64,000 bases of DNA from Convolutriloba macropyga (GCF_964194025.1 NC_134470.1:47492001-47556000); one strand, 5' to 3'. Positions 5,691 to 41,923 are shown, numbered from the stretch's first letter. Numbers and translations are program-made. The notes: generated by a model from the letters alone, not told the origin.

Positions 5691-6994
5691 TTAAAGACAC
5701 GAGTTAAACAACTGGCTCCGTTAAGTGTCACCACAAGTTGAATAGAATAAACCGCTTCACACAAAAATGATAGAGGTTGGGGGCTTAAAAGATGATTTGT
5801 TCCTGTACTCTAGCGCATTTAATTTCGAATCACACAATTCGAAAAGGATTTGGCTGTTTAATAAGTATATCATAACAATTACTGTTCACTTCAGTCAAAA
5901 ATTTTTGTTTTTATCGCTGACTCTTGCTGCCATACTCGGTATACAGAAGGCAGCCATCTAGCTTTCAATTATTTCTTTTTCATAACACATCCTTACACAG
6001 TACTCGAGATCTCTTAGAGTTAGGTTCTTTGAGCACTTTAATTTCTTGGAGGTAAGTTCGGGTGCGAAGACTATATTTTATGGAAAAACAAATGTTCTTT
6101 AGCTTCCAAAATAAATATTCAGTACGTGAAAAAAATTGAAGAGGCTTTTGGTTGCTGGATTGGACTCAATCTGCTTATTCCACATCTATGAATGTTCATC
6201 GCGAGATGTTTTCTTATTTTCTTTCTGTTAATGAGATTATGGGATAAAGCAATAGCACCATTGAATGGTACCGTAAGATGGATAGAATAGAATAGCTTCC
6301 GCCTCAATTGCTAGAAGCTGTGGGAGTTTAAATAGAATTTGATTCAGTCCTCCGGCACGTTCAATGTGAAAACACAAGTTAAAAAAGGGAAATTGCTGTT
6401 TTATAGGTTTGTCCTAACTATTAACTGGGCCGAGTTTGTCAAATTTATGGAAGATCAGCAGTAACTAACGTTAACAAGTCGGAAATTCCAACGCAATTTT
6501 GTTACAAAATTTTGGGTAGCATGCGTTGAATTTAGCGTAGATCTTACATGTTTTGCGGTGAATTTAGCGTAGATCTTACAAGTTTTGCGTTGAATTTAGC
6601 GCAGATCTTACATATTTTGTTTTAATTTAGCGGTGATCTTACATATTTTGCGTTGAATTTAGCGTAGATTTCACAAAAACATTCATTGCCGAAAACTCTG
6701 GGTGTGGGAGTCGAAGCACTGACCTCATGCTTACTTGTCGCCTCTTTTACCACTATGCCACAGATCGTTACTTTTCTTAGGATCCGCACTCTTTTCAAAT
6801 CGGACTGTAACATCACTTTTCACATAATTTTGGCGTTTCTATGCGTAGATCTTACATATTTTTGCCTGACTTCAGCTTAGAACTGATTCGATATTTTTTC
6901 AAGTTTTGCTCTAATTTTCTGTCTTTTCAACACTGTCCAGTTTTTATTGTACGCAACCGGTTTCTGATTTTTTGAAAAAAAATCTCAAAAAAAT

Positions 6995-7292
6995 CCCCCC
7001 AACCCCAAGTACCCCCCTCACCACACGTACCCCCAAACGCGTACCCTAACCTAACCCCTCAATATACCCCGCCCAATTCACACCCCCCCTCACGTGCCCC
7101 CGCGTACTCCATCCCCCCTCACCACACGTACACCCCCACACAGCCCCCCCCCCCCCCCGCCTCGTACCCCCCCCCCACCACCTGACCCCCCTCGTACCCC
7201 CTCCCACACGTACTCCTCTAGACTGCGCACTCCCCCTCATGACGTAGCCCCACTTCTCCCCCTCCCTCCACGTACGCCACCCCCACCACACA
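6995..7292. repeat. C-rich low-complexity tract (recurring CGTACCCC motif; G-rich on the minus strand)
   Basis: Long C runs of up to ~16 nt with recurring CACGTAC/CGTACC. This tract is the source of the spurious Pro/Gly-rich ORFs 7046-7381. Confidence 0.85.
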
Positions 7293-7332
7293 AAAATCGA
7301 AAAGAAAAATTTTGTAGTGTCAACGGTATATT

Positions 7333-9775
7333 CAATGCAAAATATGTAAGATCTACGCTAAATTCAACGCAAAATAAGTGAGATCAACGCTAAATTCAAC
7401 GCTAAAGATGTAAGCTCTACGCTAAACTGAACGCAAATATTTAAGATTGGCCTTGAATGCGTTGACAAAATGTGAGATCTACGTTTAACTCAACAAAAAT
7501 ATTTAAGATCTGCGCTAAATTCAACGCAAAATATTTAAGATCTACGCTAAATTCAACGCAAAATATGTAAGATTGGCGTTGACTGCGTTGAATTTTTGTA
7601 AGATCTATGCTAAATTCAATGCAAAATATGTAAGATCTACGTTAAATTCAACGCAAAATATATAAGATTTACGCTAAATTCAACGCGAAATATGTAGGAC
7701 TGGCAATGAATGCGTTCAATTTATGTCAGGTCTACGCTAAATTCAATGCAAAATATGTAAGATCTAAGCTAAATTCAACGCAAAATATGTAAGATTGGCG
7801 TTGACTGCGTTGAATTTTTGTAAGATCTATGCTAAATTCAATGCAAAATATGTAAGATCTACGTTAAATTCAACGCAAAATATATAAGATTTACGCTAAA
7901 TTCAACGCGAAATATGTAGGACTGGCAATGAATGCGTTCAATTTATGTCAGGTCTACGCTAAATTCAATGCAAAATATGTAAGATCTAAGCTAAATTCAA
8001 CGCTAAATATGTAAGATCTACGCTAAATTCAACGGAAAACATGTGAGATTGGCGTTGATTGCGTTGAAAATATGTGAGATCTACGCTTAATTCAATGCAA
8101 AATATACAAGATTTAGGCTAAATTCAACCCAAAATATGTGGAATTGGCGTTGAATGCGTTCAAACTATGTAGGATCTACGCTAAATTCAACTCAAAAAAA
8201 TATAAAATCTACGCTAAATTCAACATAAAAAATGTAAGATCTACGCTAAATTCAACGCTAAATAGAAAAGCTCTACTTTGAATTCAAGGCAATATATGTA
8301 AGATCTACGCTAAATTCAACGCAAAACATGTAGGATTGGCGTTGAATGCGTTCAATTTATGTAAGATCTACGCTAAACTCAGTGAAAAATATGTGAGATC
8401 CACGCTAAATTCAACGCAAAATATATAAGATCTACGCTAAATTCAACGCAAAATATACAAGATTTACACCAAATTCAACGCAAAATATATAAGATTTACG
8501 CTAAATTCAACGCAAAATATCTAGATTTGGCGTTGAATGCGTTCAACTATTGTAAGATCTACGCTAAATTCAATGAAAAATATGTAGGACTGGCATTGAA
8601 TGCGTTCAATTTATGTCAGGTCTACGCTAAATTCAATGAAAAATATGTAAGATCTAAGCTAAATTCCACGCAAAATATATAAGATCTACGCTGAATTCAA
8701 CGCTAAATATGTAAGATATACTCTAAATTCAACGCAAAACATGTGAGATTGGCGTTGATTGCAGTGAAAATATGTGAGATCTACGCTTAATTCAACGCAC
8801 AATACACAAGATTTAGTCTAAATTCAACGCAAAATATGTGGAATTGGCGTTGAATGCGTTCAAATTTTGTAGGATCTACGCTAAATTCAATGAGAAATAT
8901 ATACGGTCTATGCTAAATTCAACGCACAATGTGTAAGATCTACGTTGAATTCAACGCTAAATATGTAAACTCTACTTCGAATTCAACGCAAAATATGTAA
9001 GATCTACGGTAAATTGAACTCGAAATGTGTAAGATCTACGCTAAATTGAACTCGAAATATGTGAGATTGGCGTTGATTGCGTTGAAAATATGTGAGATCT
9101 ACGCTTAATTCAACGAAAATATCTAAGATCTACGGTAAATTGAACGCAAAATATTTAAGATCTACGATAAATTGAACTCAAAATATGTAAGATTGGCGTT
9201 GAATGCGTTGAATTTATGTGAGATCTACGCTAAATTCAACGCAAAATATGTAAGTTCTACGCTAAATTCAACGCAAAATATTTAAGATCTACGCTAAATT
9301 GAATTCGAAATATTTAAGATGTACGCTAAATTGAACTCAAAATATGTGAGATTGGCGTTGATTGCGTTGAAAATATGTGAGATCTACGCTAAATTCAACG
9401 CAAAATATGTAAGTTCTACGCTAAATTCAACGCAAAATATGTAAGATTTACGCTAAATTGAACGCAAAATATTTAAGATCTACGTTAAATTGAACTCAAA
9501 ATATGTGAGATTGGCGTTGATTGCGTCGAAAATATGTGAGATCTACGCTTAATTCAACGAAAATATATAAGATCTACGGTAAATTGAACGCAAAATATTT
9601 AAGATCTACGCTAAATTGAACTCAAAATATGTAAGATTGGCGTTGAATGCGTTGAATTTATATGAGATCTACGCTAAATTCAACGCAAAATATGTAAGAT
9701 TTACGCTAAGTTCAACGCAAAATATGTAAGATTAGCGTTCAATGCGTTGAATTTATTTAAGATCAACGCTTGAGC
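7333..9775 (+). repeat. Minisatellite of 32-bp A units (AAGATCTACGCTAAATTCAACGCAAAATATGT) and 31-bp B units (AAGATTGGCGTTGAATGCGTTGAATTTATGT), roughly 75-78 units estimated from length
   Basis: Tandem units are directly visible. A 222-bp higher-order block (5A+2B) starts at 7571 and recurs at 7793. Confidence 0.95.
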
Positions 9776-10383
9776 GTATATCTCACATGAATTCAACAGT
9801 TTCAACGCCAATGTTACTTAATTTTGCGTTTTTTAGCGTTGAAACCCCAGCCCGGTTAGGTTGTTAGTCTCAGATCAATTTGTTTATCACAAGTTTTGAT
9901 CCCGTCAGAAGGAAAATTCTGTTGTTCTCGCTGACTGTTGCTGCCAATCTGCGTAGACAGATGGCAACCTTCTAGATTTCAATTATTTCTTTTTCATGTT
10001 TCGTCCATGCACAGTTCTCCTTTTCCCTTACGGTTGGTTCTCTATAAGCACTTCATCACTTTAGTTCTCTCAAGGAAAGTTTGTGCCTGATGAATATATT
10101 CTATAGAAAAACAAAGGTTCTTTAGCGTCCAAAATAAATCAGTACTTGAAATAAAAGAAAAAACGATTAGGTTATGAGAGGCCGATGGTAAGCTGAATTA
10201 TAACCATCAAGGAATTATTGATGTCTCTTCGTTTTTTTCCTAAAAACGGTAGTTGTATCGTTGTTTTTTGCCCATTATCTGTTATTGGTTTGAAAAATTC
10301 AATTAAACAGTTCGTTTGTGTCTACCGAATGCGTCTCTCTTGGTAAAATGCGTATCAAAGAACTGATAGCTAGTTCACTGCTT

Positions 10384-10943
10384 CCCAGGCTGAGGTCGCA
10401 GACCGAAACCAGATATGTCCAGACCGAAATGAACGCACGAAGGGGGTGTCGTGCGTTCAAAATTAAACGGTCTGGAAACACGTATGAACGCACGATGGTT
10501 TGGACATGAACGCACTATGGTTTGGACATGAACGCACTATGGTTTTGACATGAACGCACGATGGTTTGGACATGAACGCACTATGGTTTGGACATGAACG
10601 CACTATGGTTTGGACATGAACGCACTATGGTTTGGACATGAACGCACTATGGTTTGGACATGAACGCACTATGGTTTGGACATGAACGCACTATGGTTTG
10701 GACATGAACGCACTATGGTTTGGACATGAACGCACGATGGTTTGGACATGAACGCACTATGGTTTGGACATGAACGCACGATGGTTTGGACATGAACGCA
10801 CTATGGTTTGGACATGAACGCACTATGGTTTGGACATGAACGCACTGTGGTTTGGACATGAACGCACTATGGTTTGGACATGAACGCACTATGGTTTGGA
10901 CATGAACGCACTATGGTTTGGACATGAACGCACGATGGTCTGG
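10384..10943. mobile_element. Terminus of a CCCAG-ended EnSpm/CACTA-like element followed by an expanded 22-bp array
   Basis: It starts CCCAGGCTGAGGTCGCAGACCGAAA...ATGTCCAGACCGAAATGAACGCAC and matches the reverse complement of the end at 12578 over ~100 bp. Confidence 0.7.
10485..10943 (+). repeat. 22-bp tandem array TGAACGCACTATGGTTTGGACA, 20 full copies plus one partial
   Basis: Near-perfect head-to-tail units from 10485; the last (partial) unit starts at 10925. No spacers. Confidence 0.97.
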
Positions 10944-11456
10944 TGACCGCACCAATTGACAAATCCCAAGATCATTTATTCCTTAAAGTATCCATTCTAG
11001 GTCGTTTTTTTTGACGTTTTCCGTCATTTTTGAGAATCTTTTCTCTTTTAAAAGTCTCGTAAAAGAGAAATATAAAATAAAAATTAAAATTCGAAAATTA
11101 AAATTATTGTGCATTAAAATTAAAAATAAAAGTAAAACATCACAAAATAAAACTAGTTTGTAATAGGCGAGCCTGTCATACAATTTTAAGCGAGGAATAC
11201 TACACTGCCTCCGTCGTATAAATTTAAAGGTTTTCCCTTCACTCACGTATTTTTTGGTTCGTTTACTTATGGCTCCTGTTTGAGTTAATTGCCCTCTAAT
11301 TTTTTTTCCATTTGATTTCAAACTTTTTCCACAGGTAAGAGCTCTTACATGTCACATAATTGATCTCTTCAAACAAATATTCATGATCATCTTTATTCTG
11401 ATGACGTAGAAAAGATACGGTTTAGAATTGCTCATGTTTTATACCTGTTGGGTCCT

Positions 11457-12578
11457 CCCAGGTTGAGGTGCCAGACTGAAAGTCGATATGTCCAGACCGT
11501 CCGAGACGGAAAGTGTCTATGTCCAGACCCTACCAGACGGAAAGTGCCTATGTCCAGACTTTCGTGCGTTCAAAATTTTTCGTGCGTTCATCGTGCGTTC
11601 AAAACTCCCTATGTCCAGACTTTCGTGCGTTCAAAATCTTATATGACCAGACTTTAGTGCGTTCCAAATTAAAATTCGTGCGCTCATTTGTGCGTTCAAA
11701 AACACCTATGTCCAGACTTTCGTGCGTTCAAACGTGCTTATGTCCAGACTTTCGCGCGTTCAAAATCTTATATGACCAGAGTTTAGTGCGTTCTAAATGA
11801 AAAATCGTGCGCTCATTTGTGCGTTCATGTCCAGACTATCGTGCGTTCAAGAACACCTATGTCCAGACTTTCGTGCGTTCAAAAATGCGTATGTCCAGAC
11901 TTTCTTGCGTTCATGTTCAGATAACGTTTTTATAATGTATTCGTTTCAAATATAGATACGTTAGGGTGATGGTTGTGATGAAGTGCCCAAGCAGTTCCTA
12001 CATTTTGTTTAATAAAAGATGTTCGATGAAAGCATTGGCTGAAGGGGCTGCCAGCGACCTAGTTATTAAAGTATGATTTGCTTTGCAACTTCAGCAAGGG
12101 TTTATAATTCTAGGTAGGAAATTGTTTTAAACAAAGCAAAATGTTGGATGCGAGTTTTCCTGCGTTCGATGTTTTGTAACTTTTGAACTCAAGTTAGTTG
12201 AGGTTTTCTTGGTAGAAAGCTTTCACTTGAGTGAGCACTCTATTAAGAGTGTTTAGTCAAACATGGACTCATTAGTTTTTGGCATTCTTGTTTCCATTCA
12301 AAAAATTTTCGTGCGCTCCGAGTCACAATGTCCAGACTTTCGTGCGTTCAAAATTGCGTATGTCCAGACTATCGTGCGTTCACAATTGCATATGTCCAGA
12401 CTATCGTGCGTTCAAAATTGCATATGTCCAGACTATCGTGCGTTCAAAATTGCATATGTCCAGACTATCGTGCGTTCATTTTCTTTTCCAGACCGTGTAA
12501 TTTTGAACGCACGACGCCACCTTGTGCGTTCATTTCGGTCTGGACATATCGACTTTCGGTCTGGGACCTCAACCTGGG
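11457..12578. mobile_element. Non-autonomous EnSpm/CACTA(CMC)-like element with ~32-bp subterminal repeats
   Basis: TIRs CCCAGGTTGAGGT...ACCTCAACCTGGG with a 2-bp direct flank CT/CT. Repeated TGTCCAGACT(A/T)TCGTGCGTTCAAAA units at ~11510-11915 and ~12330-12480. CCC ends, a 2-3-bp TSD and subterminal repeat arrays are typical of CMC/EnSpm. Confidence 0.7.
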
Positions 12579-24777: not shown

Positions 24778-25830
24778 TCAGTGACCCTCCCGCGCACCTG
24801 ACGATTGTGGGAACACACGGCTTAGGGTTACTGCTGGTCTTTGTACCATTCCTGTAGCCGTCTGGATGTCGAAACTCCTGGCTATCCCGTCTGAACCTCT
24901 GTGTGCTTTCACAATCTTCCCAAGAGGCCAGATGCCTCTGGGTGTGAACTCCTTGAGCACCCACACAATGTCACCTTCATCCAGCTCATCATGTGATCTT
25001 TGCCACTTCGTTCTCTTGTTGAGCTCAGGAACATATTCCTTCAGCAACCTGCTCCAGTAGTGATCAAGTAGTGTCTGAGTCAACTTGAAGTCCTTAGTGG
25101 AGAACCGCTGGTTGCTGTTCACAAGAGGTTTCAAACACATGTGAGGTCGGCGAAGGAGGAAGTGATTCGGAGTAAGTGGTCCCTCATTTGAGATGCTGCA
25201 GCCCACATGAGTTAATGGCCTGGAGTTCAAAATTGCCTCGGCCTCTGCCACAACTGTCTGGAAAACTGAGAATGTTAGTTTCCGACTGCCCAGCACTATT
25301 AGTAGACTCCTCTTTGCGGTCTGTATCAGCCTCTCCCAGACTCCTCCGAAGTGTGGTGCCAATGGAGGGTTGAAAGTCCACTGAATGTTCTGTTGAGCCA
25401 ATTGCAGTCTGATGTACTCATTGTCTGGCTTGTAGCTTCTCTGGAACTTTAACTTAATTGCTTGGTTGGCTCCAATGAAGTTTTTGCCATTGTCACTCAC
25501 AATGAGGCCAGGGTATCCACGTCGTGAGACAAATCTGCGGATTGTCATGAGAAGACAATCAGTTGAGAGGTCATGGCATACTTCTAGGTGGACAGCTCTG
25601 GTGACCAGGCATGTGAACAAGCAGACGTAGTGCATCTGGGTGCCCTCTCTCTTGTCCTCAATGTAGAAAGGTCCAAACATGTCCATTGCTGTGTTGACGA
25701 AAGGGTACTGCTTGTTTGCATCTGGAAATCTGAATTCAGGAAGATCGGCCATCTTAGGTCTCACATTGTCTGCTCTCCATCGTCTGCAAATGAAACAGTA
25801 TTTCCCCAGACTTCGCAGCACTTTTCTCAT
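24778..25830 (-). CDS. Pao integrase (rve core plus C-terminal DUF5641-like region); frameshifted continuation of pol
   Basis: CFIC (end of the HHCC finger), DMFGP, VTRAVHLEV, VSDNGKNF, GGVWERLI, LNSRPLT, LTPNHFL and WPLGKIV. Confidence 0.93.
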   Translation of the reverse strand: MRKVLRSLGKYCFICRRWRADNVRPKMADLPEFRFPDANKQYPFVNTAMDMFGPFYIEDKREGTQMHYVCLFTCLVTRAVHLEVCHDLSTDCLLMTIRRFVSRRGYPGLIVSDNGKNFIGANQAIKLKFQRSYKPDNEYIRLQLAQQNIQWTFNPPLAPHFGGVWERLIQTAKRSLLIVLGSRKLTFSVFQTVVAEAEAILNSRPLTHVGCSISNEGPLTPNHFLLRRPHMCLKPLVNSNQRFSTKDFKLTQTLLDHYWSRLLKEYVPELNKRTKWQRSHDELDEGDIVWVLKEFTPRGIWPLGKIVKAHRGSDGIARSFDIQTATGMVQRPAVTLSRVFPQSSGAREGH

Positions 25831-28800
25831 CCAATCATCAAGAAAGTCTGTTGCAGGTGAGCCTTCACATGTTCCACACCCTGATGGCCACAGTCATGGT
25901 GCGCCTTTTCAATCAACAGTCTTGCAATTTTGCTCCTGCTATGGAGAAGAAGCGGATGTTTTGCATTGTAGGTTAGAGGTGCCTTGTTGAGTCTTCCTCC
26001 TACCCTCAAGAGTCCGTCTTCATCTAGAAAGGGTGTGAAGGGCATCAGCTTGTCTCCTTTCTCAAGATTGCCTCCCTTCAACAGTGCAGAAATTGTTCCT
26101 GAGAACAACTCGTTTTGGGACATTTTGATGAGGTAGTTCCTTGCACTGTTCTCATCTGATGCAAAAGTGTTAGTGTTGGATGTCTCAGGTGATTCGTTTT
26201 GTCTTCTAGTTCGAACTTTTGCCCTGAAGCGTCTTATTGCCTGGAACACCATTCTAGTAGAGTTGAGCAGTCGACTCCATGTTGAAAATTTGTCAACCTC
26301 AATGACCGGCGTCTGAAGTTGTGTCGCTTGTGTGGCGCATATGTGGGGATCACTGTCCTCGGCAAAATTCCAAGAGTCTTGAGGTTTGCTCAGAAAGTCC
26401 GGTGGTTGGAGCCACAGCTTTGGTATGTCTGATGGGGTGAGGCCTCGTGTTCCATGGTCAGCGGGATTCATCTTTCCAGGGATGTGTCTCCAATTCTCTT
26501 GGTTGGAATTCTCGTGAATTTTGGTTAATCTGTTGGCAATGTACATTTTCTGTCTTTGCTTGGATTGGATCCAACCAAGTGTAGCGGTGCTGTCTGTCCA
26601 AAAGTGTTTTGAACTTATTGTAGTTGTCATCTCGCTCTCACAGAACCCAGCTAGCTCTGCTCCAAGTGTTGCAGCTTCCAACTCCAGTTTTGGAATGCTC
26701 AACTGCTTGATCGGTGCCACTTTTGTTTTACTGATCACATATCGGGATGTGGAAGATCCATCGGCGTTCGTTGTCCTCACATAAACTATGGCAGCAATTG
26801 CACTCATTGAGGCATCAGTGAACGTGTGAAGTTGATGGGTTCCATTGGTGCTGGGAATCAAGCATCTGGGAATTTCAATTGGAGTCATGTTGTCGAACTC
26901 ATCCATCCACTCCTGTAGTTCCTGTTGGTAGCATTCTGACACAGGTTGATCCCAGTTTCTTCCCTCTTTAATGATTCTTTGGAGGCTGCATCTAATTCTA
27001 ATGGCAAAGGGTGATATCAGTCCGATTGGATCGAACAGAGAAGCTGCCATTGAAAGAACCTTTCTTTGGGTCATCTGTTGTCCTGTGTAGAGAAACTTCG
27101 GTTTTGCAAACATCAACTTGTCAGTTTTGGGGTCGCACGTCTGACCAAGGATTCTTTGGGCTTTCATTTCCACCTTGTCTTCTTCCAGTAGGTTTTCTAA
27201 TGCGGCTGGTCTGTTGCTCAAGAACTTCGTCAGATTGAATCCTCCTGTATGTAAAACAGTTTTGATCTCCTCTGCACTTCTGCGGGCCTCCTCTTCAGAA
27301 GGGTAGGTCTGCATGAAATCATCCATGTAGAACTGCTGCATGATTGATGCGTAGGCCTCTGGATGTTCTTGTTTGTGGTCATTTGCACACTTCTGCAGAA
27401 CAAATATTGCACAAGAAGGTGAGCATGTGGCTCCAAAAATGAGTCGATTGTATTTGAAGATTTTTTCATTGCCATCCTCTGTCCAGAGAAAACGGAGATA
27501 GTCTTGGTCTTTTGGTTGGATGCCAATCTGCATGAACATTGCCTCGATGTCCGCTGTGATTGCCACTGAGTACTGTCTGAAGCGGAGAAGAAGGCCATGC
27601 AGTTTGCAGAGTAGATCCGGCCCTGTCAGCAATGCATCATTGAGTGAGAGTCCCTTATATTTGGAAGCAGCGTTTGTGACTCTGCGGATTTTGTCTGGTT
27701 TCTGTTTGTTGATCACTGGGTGATGGGGAAGGTACCAGACAGAGTGTCTGCAACTGGGGTCTGCAGTTGTGATGTAGTTTTTATCCAAATCTTTTTTGAT
27801 TGTTTCCTCATAGCGGTCTCTCAAGTTTGTGTCCCTCTCCAACCTCTGCTGCAGAGCGTGCCACTGAACTTTGGCCATGAAGTAGTTGTTAGGTAGTGTG
27901 ATGTCTTTCTCCCATGGAAGTCCAATCTGGTATCTGTCACCAATGTGTCTTATGGTATCATTGAGGATGGAAACCGCCTCCTTGTCATCTGAAGACTGTC
28001 CCTTTGAAGAACACTGATTGAAGTTCACTCCTTCAATTGTCCAGAAGAGCTGGAGAAGATCTTCATCTGGATCGTCTTGCCGTCTCTTGATATGATTGAA
28101 AAGTGTTATGTTTGTGCTGTTTGACTGTCCGACCCTCTTCTGTGTGTACCTCTGAGGAATGGGCCCTGTCAGTGTCCAGCCAAGCAGAGTGTTGACTCCG
28201 TATGGTGTACCAGTGGGTCCCGTTGTGAACTGTCTGGGAACTGTTGCTGTGAATGCGTCTGCTCCAATCAATATTCCGATCCGGTTGTCCCTGATTGTTG
28301 GAAATCTTATGCTCTGGAGGTGAGAATGGTCTCTGCAGATCTCATTCAACATTTCAATTTGAACTCTTGGCATGCGAAACTCGTCCATTGCTGTTGCGTA
28401 CACAGGGATTCTGATCACAGGACAACTGCTGTACAAAGCTCCTATGCCGATCATGACATCTGCTGTTTTGACTGAGTGTTCACCATGAAGTGAAGCTAGT
28501 GGTAGGGTTATGTCTTTTGGTTGTTGAACTTGAAGTGCATCAGCAACCTTCTGTGTTATTTGAGTATTGTCACTGCCACTGTCCAGCAATGCGTAGGTTT
28601 CAATGCAAAGGCAAAGATCTCTGTTGAAAAGTGTTACTGGTATTGCCTGCAACTGAATCTGCGGTCTGATCCAAGAAGTCTCCTGCTGGTTGCTGCAGGT
28701 GTAGTTTTGTTGCGGAGTAGTTGCCTGCTGCTGAGCCACAGTGCGTTGATTGCTACTCTGCTGTCTGTTGTTGTTGTCGTTCTGCGTGTTCATCGGCTGA

Positions 28801-29255
28801 GGGTGAAAACCATTTTTGTTCCAGTTGCCCCTGTGTGAAGTACTGCTGTTAGATCCACCATGTCTGTTTTGAGTTCCACTCTGTTGGTTGTAGTTTGAAC
28901 TCGTCTGCTGCCTTTGGTTTTCATTGTTAAAGTTACGTCCATAGTTTGACTGGTTTTGGTTGGTTTGGGGTCTGAAGTTATTTTGTGAGTTTTGGTTCCA
29001 GTTCCCATTTGGTTGTGCATATTGTTGCATCTGCCTTGCATCTGTCCTATGGAGTGTTGAGTGATGGAAGCCATTGCATCTGTCCACAAGGCACCTTGTT
29101 TTTGATTGACAGAGACCCTTTTCATGACCTCTTAGACAGTTAGGGCAGAGATTGAACCTTCTCACACAACACTGTCGGTCATACACTGTTTTTTTCCAAG
29201 TATTCGGGACATCGACCAAGGTTGTGGTTTTGTGAGCAGAGTTGACATGACACAT
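25827..29255 (-). CDS. Pao gag-pol middle: zinc knuckles, aspartic protease, RT, RNase H (Peptidase_A17-type) and integrase N-terminus
   Basis: CPNCLRGHEKGLC, CNGFHHSTLH, ALLDSGS, WYLPHHPV, GPDLL, ADIEAMF, FYMDD, LHTFTDAS, IPKLELEAA, FWTDS, NPADHGTRG, GLLRVGGRL and HHDCGHQG. Confidence 0.95.
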   Translation of the reverse strand: MCHVNSAHKTTTLVDVPNTWKKTVYDRQCCVRRFNLCPNCLRGHEKGLCQSKTRCLVDRCNGFHHSTLHRTDARQMQQYAQPNGNWNQNSQNNFRPQTNQNQSNYGRNFNNENQRQQTSSNYNQQSGTQNRHGGSNSSTSHRGNWNKNGFHPQPMNTQNDNNNRQQSSNQRTVAQQQATTPQQNYTCSNQQETSWIRPQIQLQAIPVTLFNRDLCLCIETYALLDSGSDNTQITQKVADALQVQQPKDITLPLASLHGEHSVKTADVMIGIGALYSSCPVIRIPVYATAMDEFRMPRVQIEMLNEICRDHSHLQSIRFPTIRDNRIGILIGADAFTATVPRQFTTGPTGTPYGVNTLLGWTLTGPIPQRYTQKRVGQSNSTNITLFNHIKRRQDDPDEDLLQLFWTIEGVNFNQCSSKGQSSDDKEAVSILNDTIRHIGDRYQIGLPWEKDITLPNNYFMAKVQWHALQQRLERDTNLRDRYEETIKKDLDKNYITTADPSCRHSVWYLPHHPVINKQKPDKIRRVTNAASKYKGLSLNDALLTGPDLLCKLHGLLLRFRQYSVAITADIEAMFMQIGIQPKDQDYLRFLWTEDGNEKIFKYNRLIFGATCSPSCAIFVLQKCANDHKQEHPEAYASIMQQFYMDDFMQTYPSEEEARRSAEEIKTVLHTGGFNLTKFLSNRPAALENLLEEDKVEMKAQRILGQTCDPKTDKLMFAKPKFLYTGQQMTQRKVLSMAASLFDPIGLISPFAIRIRCSLQRIIKEGRNWDQPVSECYQQELQEWMDEFDNMTPIEIPRCLIPSTNGTHQLHTFTDASMSAIAAIVYVRTTNADGSSTSRYVISKTKVAPIKQLSIPKLELEAATLGAELAGFCESEMTTTISSKHFWTDSTATLGWIQSKQRQKMYIANRLTKIHENSNQENWRHIPGKMNPADHGTRGLTPSDIPKLWLQPPDFLSKPQDSWNFAEDSDPHICATQATQLQTPVIEVDKFSTWSRLLNSTRMVFQAIRRFRAKVRTRRQNESPETSNTNTFASDENSARNYLIKMSQNELFSGTISALLKGGNLEKGDKLMPFTPFLDEDGLLRVGGRLNKAPLTYNAKHPLLLHSRSKIARLLIEKAHHDCGHQGVEHVKAHLQQTFLMIG

Positions 29256-30714
29256 CTGGTGGCCCCCTTCTAGAAGAACTGTTCACTCTGGTTCTCTGGT
29301 TCCGTTGTGGGGAGATGTCCTCACACGCCTCTGCGTAGGAGTCAATCCAATCAGCAAAGTGGGTAAGGTTAGGTTGCAGCAAGGCTTGGCTTCTTGTGTG
29401 TTGATTCCATCTGATTATCATGGTAGCGTTCAGTTTGTCTCTGGCCATTCTCAGGACGGCTGAAGACTTGAGGTCAGCTTCAAATTTGTGAAGCCTGAAT
29501 GTTTGTACCAGTCTCCTCAAGAAGGATGAAAAGCTCACAAAAGTGTTTGGTTCGTCCAGTCTGGGTTTCGGCCACTTCTCCAATTGATCTAGGTATGCAG
29601 CGACAATATGCTGTGGTTTGCCAAACTTTCTGGTCAGTTCAGCGATAGCTTCATGGTAGTAGTCCCCATTGTATGAGTATCCACTTATGGAATCTCTTGC
29701 CTTATGTGTTACAGAGTTTTGGAGGTATGTCATTTTTTGAGCGTCTGAGAGGCCACTGTTGTTGTGAATGGTCGCTTTGAAGAAGCTGAACCACTGGTGC
29801 CATTTCAAAGGATCACCTGTGAAATTATCAATTGATATCTTGGGCAAACTCATTGTGTTCTGTATCATCAGTGCCTGGTGTTGCATCCAGTCTGGTGGAG
29901 AACTCGGGAAACTCGGGAAGCCATTGTATAGGTTGTTGTTAGAGCCGTTGTTATAGTGTATTTCATGCCCGGTACAACTGTTCAGTGGTTGTTGATTTTG
30001 TGGTGTGTACCTATGGCTCATGGTAGGACCAGCTTGGCTATTGATGTGAAAAGAAAGTGGTTGTTGCAAATGCCCAGCTCTATCCTCACTCTCATGTTGG
30101 TTCTGTCCTCGAACATGCTTCTCTTCTCTCGATCGAATTGAATTTTGCCAGCCCTCATCTATTCTCAAGGCCCCTGTGAGAAATTCTCTGTTCCTTCCTC
30201 TCTCTTCAATGTTAAAAACGGGTTGAAAATTATCAGGGTCTTCTGAGTCGGACGAGTCAGCTTTGTTTGTTTCCTGATTGTTGCGGCTTGCCAACTGATG
30301 TTTCATTTGTTTCATTGCTCTATTGCGTAAAGGGTACTGTTTTTTCAGTAGATTAGGGGAAGGCGCTGCTGATGTGTTGAAAGCAGATTCAGTGTCACTT
30401 GCATCCGTTCTGTGTGCTTTTGCTCTCTGTTTGCATTTCAGCATGGTTATGTTTCTTTCAGCAGATTCATTAGCAAGTGTTGTCAACTCTTCACTTGTTA
30501 GCTGTAGCTTCATGAGTTCATTGCAACTTCTGTCCAACTGCTCTTTTTGAGACCTCAAAAGTTCCAAAGTTTCACGTAGTATGCTTAGACCTTCGTTACT
30601 ATTGCTTTGTTCTTCGAAGAGGTCTTTTACTGCGTTCCACTCTATCACTTTCAGCTGAAGTTGTTGCTTGAGGCTGTTCTTTGCTGTTGATGATGCTTTG
30701 GACTTGTTTGGCAT
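29179..30714 (-). CDS. Pao gag N-terminal part (DUF1759-like region plus first zinc knuckle)
   Basis: LPKISIDNFTGDPLKWHQWFSFF, LSDAQKMTYL, LTRKFG and CQLCSQNHNLGRC. Confidence 0.92.
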   Translation of the reverse strand: MPNKSKASSTAKNSLKQQLQLKVIEWNAVKDLFEEQSNSNEGLSILRETLELLRSQKEQLDRSCNELMKLQLTSEELTTLANESAERNITMLKCKQRAKAHRTDASDTESAFNTSAAPSPNLLKKQYPLRNRAMKQMKHQLASRNNQETNKADSSDSEDPDNFQPVFNIEERGRNREFLTGALRIDEGWQNSIRSREEKHVRGQNQHESEDRAGHLQQPLSFHINSQAGPTMSHRYTPQNQQPLNSCTGHEIHYNNGSNNNLYNGFPSFPSSPPDWMQHQALMIQNTMSLPKISIDNFTGDPLKWHQWFSFFKATIHNNSGLSDAQKMTYLQNSVTHKARDSISGYSYNGDYYHEAIAELTRKFGKPQHIVAAYLDQLEKWPKPRLDEPNTFVSFSSFLRRLVQTFRLHKFEADLKSSAVLRMARDKLNATMIIRWNQHTRSQALLQPNLTHFADWIDSYAEACEDISPQRNQRTRVNSSSRRGPPDVSCQLCSQNHNLGRCPEYLEKNSV

Positions 30715-31601: not shown

Positions 31602-31605
31602 GAAA

Positions 31606-34038: not shown

Positions 34039-34277
34039 CAGAAGTTGATATCACATATAACATATGGTTAATGGGCACAACAAAACTTACATATTATTAA
34101 ATATCAGAGTAATTACTCCAGGATAATAGCTGGCGTGTGAGTTTTTGAAAAGCTGACTGTAACTCTAATTTCAAAATTTCGTAACTGTCCTTCTCCGGTC
34201 CATTTGATTTCAGTTGATTCAACTTCATACGAACTGCTTAGCATTTGTGTTTCGTTAATGCATTGTGTAGTTGAGTA

Positions 34278-35133
34278 GGATCTTTTCAACTATTGCCCCC
34301 CTTTGGTACCTAGCAGAGAATCACCACTCCTTTTGTGCTATACTTTACCACAATATTAGTTGGCCTACAGTTTAGATAGCCGAATATCAGTTTAGGCGCA
34401 ATTGTGGACCGCTGTTCACGGCCATGCCTCTCATGCGCTACAGGATGTAATCCGGCAATCGCGGGTCAGTTATCGCGGCGAAGCCGCGACGAAGCGCGCC
34501 CACCGAAACCAGTCGGAAATTCTTTTCGCTTTGTATTCCATTTCGGCTAATTGTCCTAGCATGGCGCATTTTATTCTATCCAGTTTAACAGAGTATGAGC
34601 ATACACGGAAAATTATTAGTCGTCTCTGATTGGGTTCTACTTCATTTCACCTCTATTCATTTAACCCCCTATCATTTAACCCCGATTTATTCACCCCTCT
34701 ATCATTTAACCCCTCTATCATTTCACCCCTCTATCATTTCATCCCGCTAATTAGCAGTCGACATTAAAAGCATGTTTTGTCATAATTAAGTGGATAGATT
34801 AATCCCACGTTCGGTTGTGATAGTTTCATATCAAGTCCCACGGGCCGCTGAGGCATGGCCATGGCCCGAGAGGCATGGCCAAATAATTTTATTGCTAATT
34901 TAATAATCCTTATTTTATAGGGATTAAAATCGGGATGAAATGATAGTGGGGTTAAAAGATAGAGGGGTTAAATGATACAGGGGTGAATAAATCGGGGTTA
35001 AATGATAGGGGGTTAAATGAATAGGGGTGAAAAAATGGGACACCTCTGATTGGTTATTAAATAGCTCGTTTAAAATCTATTCAAGAATAGCCCCCCCTTT
35101 TACAAAAAGGGGGGGCAATTGTTGAAACGATCC
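34278..35133. mobile_element. GGATC-ended MITE, copy 1 (8-bp TSD), interrupted by a nested MITE
   Basis: TIR GGATCTTTTCAACWATTGCCCCCCTTT. TSD GTTGAGTA at 34270-34277 and 35134-35141. It aligns with 35377-35809 once the insert is removed. Confidence 0.9.
34633..35044. mobile_element. Nested GG-ended MITE with long TIRs made of 15-17-bp CTATCATTT(A/C)ACCCC repeats
   Basis: About 115-bp inverted arms and a TSD TCTGATTG (8-10 bp depending on boundary). The empty site GTCGTCTCTGATTGGTTA is visible in the sister copy at ~35716-35733. Confidence 0.9.
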
Positions 35134-35376
35134 GTTGAGTACTTTGAGGTTTATAGGGCAAATTTATTAATTACGCTAATATACATTACCGATATATCTC
35201 AACCATTTTGGATCTCTCGGTGATTTTCACTAAATTATTGGGGTCGTGGTAATTTTGTGCACTTGTATCGCAGCACTTAAATAGATACATTCGGTCCCAA
35301 ATAAGTTGAAGATAAAAAATATTTGCGGATTAGGTTTTGTGGCAACAACCAAAATATTGAACAACAAAATTGGCTG

Positions 35377-35809
35377 GGATCTTTTCAACAATTGCCCCCC
35401 TTTGGTACCTAGTAGAGAATCGCCACCCCTTTTGTGCTATACTTTACCACAATATTAGTTGGCCTACAGTTTAGATAGCCGAATATCAGTTTAAGTGCAA
35501 TTGCGGACCGCTGTTCACGGCCATGCCTCTCACGCGCTGTGGGATGTAATCCGGAAATCGTGGGTTGGTTATCGCGGCGAAGCCGCGACGAAGCGCGCCC
35601 ACCGAAACCAGTCGGGAATTCTTTTCGCTTTGTATTCCATTTCGGCTAATTGTCCTAGCATGGTGCATTTTATTCTATCCAGTTTAACACAGTATGATCA
35701 TACACGGAAAGTTTAGTCGTCTCTGATTGGTTAATAAATCGCTCGCTTAAATTCTATTCAAGAATAGGCCCCCTTTTGCAAAAGGGGGGGGAAATTGTTG
35801 AAAAGATCC
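35377..35809. mobile_element. GGATC-ended MITE, copy 2 (433 bp, 9-bp TSD)
   Basis: Same TIR as copy 1. TSD AATTGGCTG at 35368-35376 and 35810-35818. Confidence 0.9.
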
Positions 35810-36490
35810 AATTGGCTGTTTGGTATGTTATTTCTGAGGAAAGGTTAAGTAAAAAAATTATCCATCATGCTTCCAACAAATTCTTTCCAACTGTTTTCCT
35901 TCGAGATTTCGGAAGGACCCTGTTATTATCATAAAACCTTCCAGTGCAATATTTTTTATTTTGCATTGGAAGGGTTCATGATAATTACAGGGTTTCAAAA
36001 CGATTGTTCTAAAAGCAGCAAGAGTTTGAATTTAAAGACAAATTGGTTTTGTGGAAATTTTTTGATCTTTTTATTAGTCAGTAATAAGGGATATCACCCG
36101 GCTTTGTCTGAAATTATTCAAACTCTGAGATGTTTGTGCACTTGAGCAACTAAAAATTGTATGTGTGTGTGTGTTTGTAGTGTGTTGTACGAGTGGATTT
36201 TGAAGTGGCTCTTTCGTTTTTAGTTAAAAGCTTTGTTTAATAACTAACAATGTTTTGGGCGTAATTTTTACAAACTCAATTAAAAGTTTTGTTTTTCTTT
36301 CAAAGGAACTGATCCATATGATGGACTATTTGATTGGGAAACTCCATTGATAGATAAAGCACTCTAAATTAATCCGTTGGCTGTGAAAAAAACACCCATA
36401 TTAGTTGCAGTATTTAATGTACATGCAAATATTCGTGTACTCTAGTTACATTTTGAACGTTAGTAATATAAGACGACTAAATGTACTCAC

Positions 36491-36646
36491 CAAAATTGGC
36501 CCCGCAGGAAAATTAAGCCCATATCACAATGAATATGTGCGAAACAGATATGAAATAGTTAAAATGTAGTTCACACACTTTTATGTGTTCTTCACAGCCC
36601 CCGTAGAGCGCTTAATGAGCCGTGTGGATCGATGTTGTCAAGTAGA
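36491..36646 (-). pseudogene. Probable middle exon of the protease homolog, disrupted as assembled
   Basis: Strong acceptor TTTTTTCCTTACAG and donor G|GTGAGT. The 3' end reads HCDMGLIFLRGQF (cf. NDIALLKL) in phase 2. The 156-nt segment has stops in all three frames and cannot join phase 1 to phase 2 without an indel. Confidence 0.5.
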
Positions 36647-37327
36647 CTGTAAGGAAAAAATTGAAAAAGTATCAAAAAAATACTCTAAAAAATTTCTGTC
36701 TAAACTTTTACTTAATAGGGATACAAAGAAGATTATGTAATTCATCTCTGAAAACTGAAGAGAACTGTTGCACTATTACAAGAACGGAGATTTTTAAAGT
36801 TGTATTTATTTTTTAATAAGCGATTTTTACCAAGTTATCGGTTCTAATTCTTGCATATGCTAGTGTCATGGGTCTGTTATGAGATTTCTGTACTCAAGGT
36901 CACCCGGAATATATATACCACCGCATTTCTTGCAAAATTATGTGCTAAAACATTACTGACAAATCGACACGGGAAAAATGTATGTATAGTGCTTTCTGAT
37001 TTTTTTCAACTTTTATGAAATCAATTGTGAATAAATGTGAACCTACTTTTCGTGCAATCGAAAGCTGGAAATCGAAGCAATTTGGAGTTCATAATTCTGT
37101 CCAGTCATTTTATAAGTCACCCTCGCATCTGAAATAATCAGACAAAGTTATTTTAAATTAATCGTTTAATTCGTGTTTTTTCAAGACTGACGCTTGCGTT
37201 TGATGAAATTCAAATGCCCAGAATTTTTTTGCTAAAACCCAACCTATACGCAAATTTTTTTACCCTTACAACTAACTATTTGTTGACAACGGAAGGTGCT
37301 TCGGTCAAGTTAAAATACGAAACGTAC

Positions 37328-37574
37328 TTTTCCACGAAGTCTCGTCGATTGTTTGGTTGCTCTTCTGCTTCAGAAAACAACTCGCTGACGTTACAAATTT
37401 GTTCACGCTGACAAAGGAACCTCCGCAGTGTCTAGTCACGTAATTATCCATCGGAATCTCCATAAAAGCGAAAAACGAAGGAAAGGGGGAGTAAAATTTG
37501 GATTTCTCCTGCATTGCATGTTGGCTATTTCCATTACAGATTGTAAACAGGAGCACAAATATATGGTTAAGCAT
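37328..37574 (-). CDS. First coding exon of the protease homolog (signal peptide plus N-terminal trypsin motifs)
   Basis: MLNHIFVLLFTICNG is signal-peptide-like; then FPSFFAFM (cf. FPWMVSL) and HCGGSFVSVNKFVTSASCF (cf. CGGSLI..WVLTAAHC). Donor A|GTACGT at 37327, phase 1. Confidence 0.7.
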
Positions 37575-38475
37575 GCAGAATATAAAGTTTAGACTACAAT
37601 TAGAGACAAATTTATTGATGGGCTCTGATACAGGTAGACTTATTCGCATATATCACTTTGACGTCATAGCATCAATTCAACAGATAAAGTATTTGATATC
37701 TGTAGATTCACATATTTCATAATTTATACCTGCACTTTTAGGCCAGAGAAAATACTGACATATTAAGAAATTCTCGGCGAAGACGACTTGATTTTAAATC
37801 AACGATTCTGCTCAAATCAATTTAGATCCCTCCCATTTTGATTAGAATCTCTAACAAAACTAAGCAATTGATGAAGCGTAAAAATGAAAAATGACAGCGA
37901 TCAAAATTCATTTTTTGGTAATAGAGTTAGCCAAAAGTTGCCGCCTGAAAACCGGCATTCTCGACTTAAAAACTTATTTCTGACTCAGTGCAATAGTCTT
38001 CACACAGCATTTCAGGCTTCTTTATTATTTCCCTTTTTGTCTCAAAGCCCAAATATACAAAAAATTAGTCACATTAAACAAAAATAGGGGTTTTAAGCAG
38101 TGAAACCAATTAGTTTTTGTATGAGATACGGCTTTTATACATAGTCACTACTGTTTGGTAATAAAGTACAAAAATATTATCCCCTGTTGAGTCTTTATGC
38201 GAACAAGCAGGCTCAGTAATGTGCGTTCGCACATGAAGATCCGACCCCGCTCAACTGCATTTTTCACTTAATTGTTTACTAACTGAGGGAGAGATTGAAA
38301 AATTAAAATATCGTTCAAAAACCACTAAATGAACAAAACAATATACCTGAGAGGGCTGATGAGACCTGTCATTAATGTGACTACGAGAAAAGACAGCGAA
38401 AAAATCAAATAACACAAATATTAGTTAGTTTATATTCGTTGTCCATTCTTTTAAAAACATTAATTACCAAATCGA

Positions 38476-38606
38476 NNNNNNNNNNNNNNNNNNNNNNNNN
38501 NNNNNNNNNNNNNNNNNNNNNNNNNNNNNNNNNNNNNNNNNNNNNNNNNNNNNNNNNNNNNNNNNNNNNNNNNNNNNNNNNNNNNNNNNNNNNNNNNNNN
38601 NNNNNN
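38476..38606. other. Assembly gap (131 N)
   Basis: Run of N characters. Confidence 1.
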
Positions 38607-40739
38607 CATGAGAAAAAAATATTGGACTTCTCCTCAATGTGACTTGATAACAAGTTAACAAAAAAAGAACAAAAGAGCAAAGTTTAAAAAAACGTTGCAT
38701 AATTTTGAAAAAAAATTGTCAAACTAATCAGAAACATTAACTATCAACAGAAATCACTGAGAGATTTATTTATACCTCCATAGAAAGTGAGTGAGACCAT
38801 TCGTTATCCACTTACGACTACAACAAGTAAAAACAGGCAAAAAATCAAAACTTGCACGAAAACGGTGTCCCAGCCAATTAAACATTAATGTTCACTGAGA
38901 ACAATAACATTTGTAATTGCATATTTTTTTTTCAAAATGGAAACAGAACTCCATTATTTTAATGGCGTGAAAAGAAAACAAAAGTCGAAAAAAAAATTCA
39001 AATGTGCAAGAATCACGAATAGTTTATGAAAAGACGTAGTACCAAGAACAAGACCATTTGTAGAAAGCAAAACATTTATGAAGAGCAAATTGTAGCTCAC
39101 TAGAAAGTGGATGTGATTTGATCTCTGCAGAGAAACTAACCGATAAGTTAACAGATATAAGAATGGAAAAGCTAAAAAAATCTATTGTGTTTTTCTAAAA
39201 ACAAATATTTATAAAATGTTGAACAACAGTCTTGAAACCATTGAGTAAATAAGATAATAAAATGCGAGAAAACCAAATCTTAATTTGCCTCTCCATTGAC
39301 CATCGTAAATCTTTTTTGACAAGGACTATCTCAAAATTACAATAAAAAGAACAACAAGCATCGAAACGAAAAGTATCTCAAGCTCTTAACAAATTCCTCA
39401 GAAAAATATTGATTGAGCCCTTAAGACCTAAATCAAAACGTCTAACGAACAGAGAATTTAAAGTTGGGTTCAAAAAAATAACGAGATCTTCCAATAATGA
39501 GGCTAAGTCATAAAATTGTTACGAAACTGTGGAACACGAAAAAGTGACGAAAAACCAGAATAAAAACGGAAAAGTTGAAGAGCATTTCATTTTTGTAGAC
39601 TTTAGTTTTTAAAATCACTAAAACCATCAGCTAGATATCGATATCAGCTGTTGAACTTATTTATATATTAACTGTTAGTCGTTGAGAACTTTTATTACCC
39701 AATATATGGCGTACAACATCAAAAAGTAACAAGGAAAACAGGACAAAGGAGAAACTACCAATTTCTGCAAGAGACCAGTGCTGCAGCCATTAAAAACATA
39801 AGTTATAAAAACAATAAATGTACTGGATTGCGTTCTTTAAGCGTTTTCGGTTTGCATTTTCAGTAACGTTGCAATTAACCACAGAAACAAACAATGGGCA
39901 ATTATGCACAAACAACACAGAATTTTGTATGAAAACTTGTAGTACGGGAAACAAAAAGTCGTTATTTAAAATAACCAACACAACGATTAGATTGTGTCTT
40001 ATATAAAAGAAAGTTAGACCTGTTTTTACTGAGATTAAGCTAAAAGTTGACAGAGAAGATATTAGAAATTGTTAACTTCAAAAAGTCACTGAAATTCTCT
40101 TAAAATAATTATGTTCAGTTTTCATAAGACATGCTTTGTATCAGTTCCTTTACACCTCCTGAAGAAGCTATTTTAATCAGTTGGAATCAGAAATCAGACT
40201 GTAAAAAGAATAAAAAATGAAGGCGAAACACAAGAATTCATTTTAAGTATACTAAAACTCTTCGTCAAAGCAGTAATAACCATTAGGTTTTCTCTGAAAC
40301 AAACTATATCTACTTTCGGCCAAATTTTCACTTAATTTAGAGCTGTCACTATTAGAGCAGCGAATTGAGAATTTTGTCAGTAATTAACATTAAAAAACTA
40401 TGAAGTCAGAACTTTTTGAAAAATAAAGGCAGCGGCCAAATAATAATTTCTGATTGGAAGAATCATAATGAGATCGAACCTATCTTTGATCTTTCCACGC
40501 GTCCAGAACACCACCTAATTGTTCCAAATACTTGCGAATTAGATCACTCGTTATATTAACTATTTCAGAAATAAAAAAAAAACAATGATGCATTTTGAAT
40601 AATTATTGAGTTAAATTTTAATTCTAGAGACCTTTATAGGGCGCCGAAAGTCAACTAGCTCTCTTTCGGTGCTTCAAAAGATTGTTTCGGTGGTTTTGAG
40701 TTGTCTAATTTTGACAAACATACTCAAACAAGGACCGGA

Positions 40740-41170
40740 AAATGAATTTTTGTGCCCTTTTGATAATAAAAGTGCCAATTTTGAAAATTTTGTCAAAAAT
40801 TTTAGCCAAAAAAAGTCTTCAATCGAACAATTCAGCAACGCTCTTCTATCTTGATTAACACTATCATTAGAAATTGTAACATGCTTTTTTTTATATTAGC
40901 AAAAGTGGGCCAAATTTCAGCGAAAATTACAGAAAATTTGAATAAAACTGTCGAATATTCACAAAACTTTAAACTTCGATAACGCCCTGTAAAAAAACAA
41001 AATTCGAAAAGAAAAATCTTTTCAACTTCATATTTTAGGATGTACGTGCTTTTTAATGATACCACTCGTATTTCTGTACGACGAATATTTCGATTGGCCA
41101 AAATTGTCTGAACAAAAAACCCAGTTGAGTATATAGTTCCTCCCTGAAGGGTGGTCGGAACAAAAAAAGT
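40740..41170 (+). mobile_element. Dispersed repeat ending in a hairpin (Helitron/Helentron-like), copy 1
   Basis: Homologous to ~60690-61120 and, inverted, to ~61861-62060: AATGATACC...CAAAATTGTCTGAACAAAAAA.CCAGTTGAGTATATAGTTCCTCCC...GGTCGGAAC. Confidence 0.5.
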
Positions 41171-41394
41171 ACTGAGAAGAACTGTTTTTCTGCTGCCTTT
41201 TCGAAAAAAAACTCTCACGGCTACAAAGTCTTTCGAGATGTATGATATTTTTTGACCGCTTTTAAACGTAGGAATGTTGTAGGAGGATTTTAAAACGTTT
41301 TCTAGTGATTTCTAGAAAAGAATGATTTCTGTAGACAATCAAAAATAAGGATTCAAACTGGTTATTTTCTTGAAGGGTTTTGCCAAATCAAGAG

Positions 41395-41596
41395 AAGATA
41401 AGCGGTGAAATTACATATTTTAGCGGTGAATTGTGGTGAATTTTTGTAAGATCGCCGCTTACTCTAGCGGTGAACTTACATAATTTCACCGCATTCACCG
41501 CATTTCACCGCAAAATTATGTTCGAAATTTGCGGTAAAAAAAATGACTTTTCACCGCTTATCTTACCAAATTTTTCCAATTTTTTCTCGACCCGGG
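41395..41596. mobile_element. Short relative of the 6424-9856 element using the TTCACCGC motif variant
   Basis: The reverse complement of its right end (CCGGGTCGAG...AAGATAAGCGGTGAAAAGTC...ACCGCAAATTT...ATGCGGTGAAT) aligns with the left end at 6424-6530. Confidence 0.6.
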
Positions 41597-41631
41597 AGGG
41601 ATTGTATGTTTTGGCAGGCAGTAATGTCTCA

Positions 41632-41690
41632 CCCAGTTTAAGGTCCCAGAACCAAGCCTACTCTGACCAGACCATTTCGGTCGCAAGGAG
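41632..41690 (+). mobile_element. Solo terminus of a third CCCAG-ended subfamily
   Basis: CCCAGTTTAAGGTCCCAGAACCAAGCCTACTCTGACCAGACCATTTCGGTCGCA is collinear with the ends at 10384 and 55145. Confidence 0.55.
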
Positions 41691-41773
41691 AAGCCCAATC
41701 AACAAAAACCATAACATCGCCCGATAGTGTAGAAATTGGACAAGAATGGGCCACTGTGGCGACATAGCTCCAC

Positions 41774-41923
41774 TGTAAGTGCGCTGAAGATGCGCTGAAA
41801 TTTGAATTTTCAGCGTATTTTTAAAGTTTCTGCGCATTCAGCGCATTTCTTACATAATTTGGGCGCATTCAGTGCATTTCTTAAAAAAATGCGCTGAAAC
41901 GGCTCTGATATCTCGACCTTGGT
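41774..41923. mobile_element. Fragment of the same lineage as 6424-9856 using the TTCAGCGC motif variant
   Basis: The 31-bp unit ACATAATTTGGGCGCATTCAGYGCATTTCTT aligns to the reverse complement of the B unit. It ends CTCGACCTTGGT, similar to the CTCGACCCGGG end at 41596. Confidence 0.55.

Follow-up and report, generated by a model that had tools for sequence, protein, structure and literature searches.

In En/Spm (CACTA) and Ac/Ds transposons, the element ends contain many copies of a short motif, in either orientation and apart from the short terminal inverted repeat (TIR); a protein that the element encodes binds this motif. Tetris/DAIBAM elements of Drosophila virilis have target site duplications (TSDs) of 8 to 10 bp and are assigned to Mutator (PMC4079207). 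Here we describe a lineage of non-autonomous foldback-type DNA transposons in a 64,000-nucleotide stretch of the Convolutriloba macropyga genome (GCF_964194025.1 NC_134470.1:47492001-47556000), referred to below as the window, in which an 8-mer, TTCANCGC, recurs in families whose copies nearly all carry the same fifth, central base. Among described systems, Tetris/DAIBAM comes closest in architecture. As in Drosophila FB and Tetris/DAIBAM, the elements are non-coding, modular, and present in many rearranged sizes; as in Tetris/DAIBAM, their tandem-repeat arms grow to kilobase-size satellite-like arrays, the elements share only their final ends, and an autonomous partner has not been found (PMC4079207). 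Unlike in Tetris, the TSD is 2 bp, the ends read CCCGGGYCGAG, the hairpin units measure 9 to 32 bp rather than 220 bp, and there are single-letter family variants of the 8-mer together with an internal module carrying A and B boxes. A 2-bp TSD, in place of one of 8 to 10 bp, excludes a Mutator-like foldback element of the Tetris type. The lineage is also like En/Spm and Ac/Ds in that its motif is repeated in both orientations inside the ends and apart from a short TIR. Unlike in En/Spm, however, the termini are not CACTA, the TSD is 2 bp, and the motif-binding protein is only putative.

The window contains 62 matches to TTCANCGC, compared with 5.67 ± 2.47 expected from dinucleotide-preserving shuffles, and these are concentrated in three places: 50 lie within 6424 to 9856, 7 within 41402 to 41557, and 4 within 41781 to 41898. 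A preliminary description of this DNA had reported a near-uniform central base at each place, and our counts agree. The first place has 49 A centers and a single C (at 6555), the second has C in 7/7, and the third has G in 4/4, along with CpG-decayed copies such as TTCAGTGC; plus and minus orientations are both present at each of them. All three motif strings that had been aligned position by position in that description were located, with AAGATTGGCGTTGAATGCGTTGAATTTATGT, the reverse complement of the B unit, at 9189 to 9219 (and in five more copies with no more than three mismatches), ACATAATTTCACCGCATTCACCGCATTTC at 41478, and ACATAATTTGGGCGCATTCAGTGCATTTCTT at 41853. Three elements had been recognized there, and whereas the A element is whole, the C and G items proved to be end fragments of ~196 and ~146 bp. 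The assembly gap at 38476 to 38606 falls in unrelated, AT-rich DNA and is 2.8 kb away from the closest element, and since continuity across it is nowhere needed, the finding is unaffected by it.

The A, C, and G places represent three related families of one lineage of non-autonomous foldback-type cut-and-paste DNA transposons. Common to the lineage are 11-bp TIRs, CCCGGGYCGAG...CTCGRCCCGGG, and a 2-bp target duplication of any sequence, and the arms of the elements consist of short hairpin units bearing TTCANCGC in both orientations. The parts follow the same order in all three families, namely, end, minus-to-plus motif array, A/B-box module, right arm, and end. Over the terminal 110 and 150 bp, C and G elements are collinear, with 185 of 230 non-center columns identical (80%), and the terminal regions of C and A elements are likewise collinear at 71 to 74% identity. 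The view that the three variants form one repeat lineage with common ends, which the preliminary description had based on aligned motif strings and CCGGG/CTCGACC-type ends, is thus borne out by shared 11-bp termini, TSD, part order, and collinear ends. Counting the window and 60 loci elsewhere, 38 elements have matching 2-bp TSDs (13 TA, 6 TT, 4 TG, and the rest spread over ten other dinucleotides); because 25 of the 38 are not TA but include TT, TG, AA, GT, CG, and CA, TA is a preference and not a rule. In a genome census, which consisted of exact pattern counts and the first 100 listed places of contig C1, the exact terminus occurred 10,574 times versus 71 times for a control pattern. Elements of the lineage measure 206 to 3,433 bp, are repeat-built, and are multicopy without coding capacity; with TIRs at both ends and a TSD of fixed length, they have the features of non-autonomous, MITE-like (miniature inverted-repeat transposable element) members of class II.

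The difference in central base between families is concerted. Where the ends of C and G elements are collinear, the aligned motif centers differ at 9/9 sites, eight of them by a C/G swap, whereas other columns differ at 19.6%, a rate at which nine of nine would be expected with a probability of ~4e-7 (0.196^9). The swap is not a product of drift, in line with the preliminary description. Four of the nine swapped centers are adjacent to the ends, where the surrounding sequence is unique and not repeated. Within family consensus sequences, the information content of the center is 1.6 to 2.0 bits, compared with 0.1 to 1.2 bits for the flanks; the fixed motif positions have 2.0 bits by construction.

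Genome-wide, the double motif TTCANCGCATTCANCGC occurs 16,830 times, versus 0 for a control pattern. Most occurrences are pure (AA, 7,617; CC, 5,399; GG, 271; TT, 60), but 3,483 (20.7%) are mixed, and of the 45 loci examined over the initial 8.65 Mb of contig C1, 24 are pure while 21 have at least one mixed pair. Purity, which had been taken to extend across whole elements, therefore stands as a tendency only: it is close to complete at each place in the window, but the full C consensus itself is not entirely pure (23 C, 1 A, and 1 G). Two separate copies, next to the termini at C1:1234879 and C1:7286987, share the reading C,T at offset 87, followed by G,A about 400 to 435 bp later, and since such mixed patterns recur at like offsets in separate copies, they are inherited by transposition. 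At C1:7791082-7791750, an element with both ends intact, three adjacent motifs read C, G, and A. A fourth dialect, TTCATCGC, had been predicted; it is absent as a family. T-form double motifs are scattered singly, and their 60 occurrences are a small number, such as C-to-T changes in CC copies would lead one to expect.

Subfamilies of the C family give a finer view of the same letter. In the motif next to the 5′ end (site 28), two of five older-subfamily copies have TTCAGCGC and three of five have TTCAGCAG, the young subfamily has TTCAACGC, and the C form was never seen; the center at this site is thus G in the old subfamilies and A in the young one, which is the most prolific. At site 151 the young subfamily has changed from C to G. 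Its copies are 97 to 99.7% identical to consensus, which makes it the most recently active. Changes between C subfamilies affect 2/34 centers, 5/204 other motif positions, and 31/627 spacer positions, small numbers in which there is no sign of extra constraint on the center.

Element A is a whole non-autonomous member of the A family, 3,433 bp long (6424 to 9856, minus strand in family orientation), delimited by degenerate termini and TA/TA flanks and containing the 49 A motifs and 1 C motif given above. Its TSD copies, TA at 6422 to 6423 and again at 9857 to 9858, were read directly. The left TIR (6424 to 6434, plus strand) is a CpG-decayed ACTGGGCCGAG with two mismatches to CCCGGGYCGAG, and the right TIR (9846 to 9856, plus strand) is a decayed CCCAGCCCGGT in place of CTCGRCCCGGG. 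Between them lie a short arm of 4.7 copies of a 32-bp unit (6522 to 6669, minus strand), inverted relative to the main array and holding the sole TTCACCGC, at 6555; a tRNA-type promoter-box module (6706 to 6762, minus strand), read in the sequence and with homologous modules in the C and G families; a C-rich low-complexity spacer (6990 to 7290); and a tandem array of 76 units of 32 bp (ACGCTAAATTCAACGCAAAATATGTAAGATCT) at 7323 to 9732 on the plus strand, with inverted double-motif B units interspersed and higher-order periods of 95, 127, and 222. The spacer, between the box module and the main array, has a degenerate CCCC..ACGTAC.. pattern with a period of ~18 to 21 bp, and the C and G families have no equivalent C-rich stretch. 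Because the array is built of tandem units, most A motifs are copies of one another and not independent. Among 78 genomic candidates, the A end region is 79 to 87% identical, the A double motif forms 1- to 4-kb arrays at many loci, and one A-type array, at C1:8653219-8656099, is enclosed by intact termini. The 32-bp unit is very abundant in sample contigs. The left junction of element A is present in contigs of three samples, and among the contigs listed from these samples none bridged the two flanks as an empty site would, paralogous sites not having been sought.

The C item of the window is a 3′-terminal fragment, ~196 bp of an 896-bp element, at 41399 to 41596 on the plus strand, with an exact CTCGACCCGGG at 41586 to 41596 and no 5′ end upstream. 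We searched this piece against the window's own 1.18-Gb assembly and aligned the copies together with their flanks. Among more than 2,500 genomic candidates, the scored copies are 92 to 95% identical to the window piece, and the full element has sharp ends, CCCGGGYCGAG...CTCGACCCGGG, with a 2-bp TSD in 16/16 full copies and varied duplicated dinucleotides (TT, AA, TA, TG, GA, AT, CA, and CG). Short C forms of ~198 bp begin at TAAGCGGTGAA. Head-to-head dimers of the C 3′ arm, in which a reverse-complement arm is followed by the arm and joined to it at GCTTAATATTAAGC, occur at L007:1313-1697 and G000:C4:14246073-14246435 and are further evidence of inverted arm duplication in the lineage. The G item is a terminal fragment of ~146 bp (41777 to 41922, minus strand) whose terminus is mutated to CTCGACCTTGG at 41912 to 41922; in most other genomic copies listed, the G terminus is CTCGACCCGGG. 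The G family has 622 candidates at 80 to 86% identity to the window piece, and its copies, 262 to 1,061 bp long, carry between 8 and 28 motifs; they have the same termini and are again flanked by a 2-bp duplication.

How the elements are built bears directly on how one letter might come to occupy so many dispersed and inverted sites. Single-stranded DNA of a C copy folds at -222 kcal/mol versus -94 ± 4.6 for shuffles (z = -27.9), a G copy folds with z = -9.1, and motif orientation flips from minus to plus in each element, so that inverted repeat arms folding back on each other define these as foldback elements. In the C element the internal inverted arms are 93% alike and the direct modules 80% alike. 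In two G copies, an 88- to 91-bp module bearing four G motifs is repeated 9.1 and 7.5 times at 93 to 96% matches, and these two copies are only 81 to 86% like the G copy of the window. Very small elements with the same ends, ~206 to 262 bp, exist as well. The preliminary description had considered an element-wide change of dispersed motifs hard to obtain; this argument is softened, since the elements are nested palindromes arising from direct and inverted module duplication. Plus and minus motifs face each other in near-perfect stems, so the presence of one letter in both orientations follows from inverted duplication or from pairing.

In our judgment the likeliest explanation, with an even chance of being right, is that the center letter was spread by repeat-unit copying inside elements and is tolerated by a protein, rather than forming a strict code. 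Since seven positions of the 8-mer are kept across families while the spacers drift, we infer that it is a putative subterminal binding site for a transposase or accessory protein, and the fifth base would be one that this protein tolerates rather than a strict code letter. Near-uniformity of the center in each family would then reflect concerted evolution within the element. New families may start from small deletion derivatives that retain few units, and arrays may regrow as modules of 32 to 91 bp are duplicated in direct orientation; inverted duplication, together with correction between the arms of a hairpin, could carry a variant to the opposite orientation and to neighboring sites. Cycles of deletion to few units followed by regrowth would fix whichever variant those units carried. 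By itself this account does not cover the four swapped centers in unique sequence, for which short-patch arm-to-arm correction, or else selection, would have to be invoked.

Several points weigh against this explanation. All nine centers differ between C and G on a background of 80% identity, four of them in unique context, and array amplification does not reach such sites, so that short-patch correction or selection is needed. The center is as uniform (1.6 to 2.0 bits) as the fixed positions while the flanks are near random, and selection on the center would give the same pattern. A comparison of rates between subfamilies, with changes at 2/34 centers, has very little power.

It is possible, although we lean against it, that the fifth base is instead read by a family-specific transposase or accessory DNA-binding protein with which it has co-evolved, limiting cross-mobilization between families. 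Precedents for such recognition are the 12-bp motifs of En/Spm TnpA, the AAACGG repeats of Ac, and the divergence of mariner subfamilies via lost recognition between transposase and end. The concerted change at 9/9 orthologous sites, including four in unique context in an otherwise 80% identical background, speaks for a code, as does a center that is as uniform within the family consensus as the conserved motif positions. Families with the same terminus and very different arrays also fit a two-part system of common catalytic ends and private subterminal sites. However, our searches turned up neither an autonomous partner nor a protein, there are families with mixed centers that have transposed, and the predicted T dialect is missing. 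The C-family motif nearest the 5′ end is never C, and the most successful subfamily gained an A motif and a G motif. Moreover, many array types on one terminus would demand as many private proteins. The fuller version of this proposal, in which the fifth base is a true specificity letter and the elements represent an undescribed superfamily with common cleavage ends and private arrays read by fast-evolving element-encoded proteins, strikes us as unlikely.

A decidedly improbable account is that only structure matters, i.e., that base pairing in hairpins of DNA or RNA is kept by compensating changes in the two arms and that the base is read by no protein. In its favor, the elements fold very strongly (z = -27.9 and -9.1), hairpin pseudo-matches to Rfam show plus motifs paired with minus motifs in near-perfect stems, and the three observed centers and the rare T form all preserve Watson-Crick pairs. 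Pairing couples partner sites only, though, and leaves unexplained why the same pair should occupy all stems of an element and why, across families, seven positions of the motif are kept when the rest of the stem drifts; there are also same-orientation tandem arrays, such as that at 7323 to 9732, without a partner nearby. That short AT-rich repeats merely look alike by chance, or that the pattern comes from drift by itself or from an artifact of assembly, is hardly credible, since this view has nothing in its favor beyond the shortness of the motif and is opposed by 62 matches where 5.7 were expected, 16,830 double motifs against 0 for the control, shared termini and TSDs, differences at 9/9 centers, and contigs of three independent samples that cross the left junction.

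The lineage matches none of the superfamilies against which it was checked. Members of the CMC clade (CACTA/Mirage/Chapaev) have TSDs of 2 to 5 bp (PMC12730594) and termini that are mostly 5′-CA...TG-3′, or CAC...GTG in Chapaev (PMC12730594, PMC4079192). The 2-bp TSD lies within this range, and subterminal repeats are typical of the clade, but the termini here are CCC...GGG and not CA...TG, and membership was rejected on these grounds. ISL2EU, of the PHIS superfamily, has an AT TSD within an AATT target and TIRs that usually begin with GG (PMC4482050). Its autonomous copies encode a DDE/THAP transposase and a YqaJ ORF between such ends. ISL2EU resembles the lineage in its 2-bp TSD but is excluded, since AT was the TSD in 1/38 only and the TIRs begin with CCC. 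Stowaway/Tc1-mariner MITEs likewise share a 2-bp TSD, and TA is the commonest here (13/38); they are excluded by the 25/38 TSDs that are not TA.

An autonomous partner with the same termini, the search for which the preliminary description had proposed as a check, was not found in transposase searches or in the flanks of loci. No transposase open reading frame (ORF) was present in the flanks of the 60 loci. PF13359, used to look for a Harbinger/ISL2EU partner, gave only four matches in the assembly, none with the termini or motifs of the lineage. These four are on small contigs of 54% GC (C941, C1304, C4615, and C759; L061-L064), compared with 36% GC for the window, and these contigs are probably not the animal's own but those of some other organism in the sample, perhaps a symbiont. 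PF02992 gave 726 candidates, with ORFs of ~1,000 amino acids that combine SET, DUF1258, and Transposase_21. The DUF1258/Transposase_21 ORFs of this genome sit in giant elements with CACTA ends, one of which starts with CACTACAAGG, and these elements have other arrays. In 77 kb around four CMC-type loci of a public assembly, there was no CCCGGG-type terminus or flanking TIR/TSD pair, other CMC lineages among the 726 candidates not all having been examined. In the best giant CACTA family (L077-L085; G000:C882:3328-9726 and relatives), a 1,043-amino-acid ORF joins SET to DUF1258/Transposase_21, with spliced-looking ORFs upstream and a 5-kb array of 147-bp units downstream. The 5′ end of this element, TTTATA|CACTACAAGG, is at L085:5018 (an ENA contig), immediately after a (CA)n tract.

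The box-bearing module lies at the same relative place in the A, C, and G families and is followed shortly by a T run. In element A the A box is the reverse complement of 6750 to 6762 (TGTGGCATAGTGG) and the B box that of 6706 to 6717 (GCTTCGACTCCC). Read by eye, all three families match the A box, TRGCNNAGTGG, perfectly and have at most one mismatch to the B box, GGTTCGANNCC. Besides 6706 to 6762 (minus strand) in the window, the module was placed at L004:1430-1500 and on the reverse strand of L059, at ~400 to 460 of the element. ARAGORN made no tRNA call on it, nor did Rfam, which returned only sub-threshold hairpin matches to plant miRNA families that reflect hairpin shape; because neither program calls a tRNA, we describe the module as box-bearing only. 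It may be a captured head of a tRNA or short interspersed nuclear element (SINE), with the right arm as a possible Pol III transcript. A reading of the C family as a tRNA-derived SINE was considered as well and was abandoned once a 5′ TIR and a 2-bp TSD were found, given that the module is internal, TIRs are present, and the TSD is fixed at 2 bp.

A much larger set of elements shares this terminus, and the A/C/G lineage is one of its branches; three further members are in the window, all on the plus strand. A partial element with the terminus CCCAGGCTGAGGT and a different, 22-bp array (GAACGCACTATGGTTTGGACAT) lies at 10384 to 10945. A whole element of 1,122 bp at 11457 to 12578 has the termini CCCAGGTTGAGGT...ACCTCAACCTGGG, the TSD CT, and its own array (TGTCCAGACTTTCGTGCGTTCAAAA), and a whole element of 1,751 bp at 55145 to 56895 has the termini common to the set, the TSD TT, and again its own array (GGTCTGATCAGAGGCGACTTCGAGCGCAATTGG). 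In all three the terminus is the CpG-decayed form CCCAGGYTGAGGT. Their arrays are unrelated, the first being built on a 22-bp unit, GAACGCAC, the second on TGTCCAGAC...GTGCGTTCA units, and the third on GGTCTGATCAGAGG...TCGAGCGCA units. The ORFs of the window belong to a BEL/Pao retrotransposon and a major facilitator superfamily (MFS) transporter. Three long ORFs of the former, a long terminal repeat retrotransposon, lie at 24778 to 30714 on the minus strand (DUF1759, gag-like; Peptidase_A17 and RVT_1; and rve and DUF5641), and the latter is an intronless ORF of 488 amino acids at 46077 to 47543, also on the minus strand (MFS_1 and Sugar_tr).

If the center is a recognition letter, these families would offer a natural series for the joint change in specificity of a protein and its many binding sites, and they would show how transposons escape cross-mobilization; the A, C, and G families would then record single-base switches in protein-DNA recognition in nature. 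Without a code, the lineage is a clear and countable case of concerted evolution of a short motif over dispersed, inverted copies within a mobile element. It is also a source of satellite-like arrays, such as the 32-bp array of 76 units, and belongs, as one branch, to a large group of this genome's elements united by one terminus and a 2-bp TSD.

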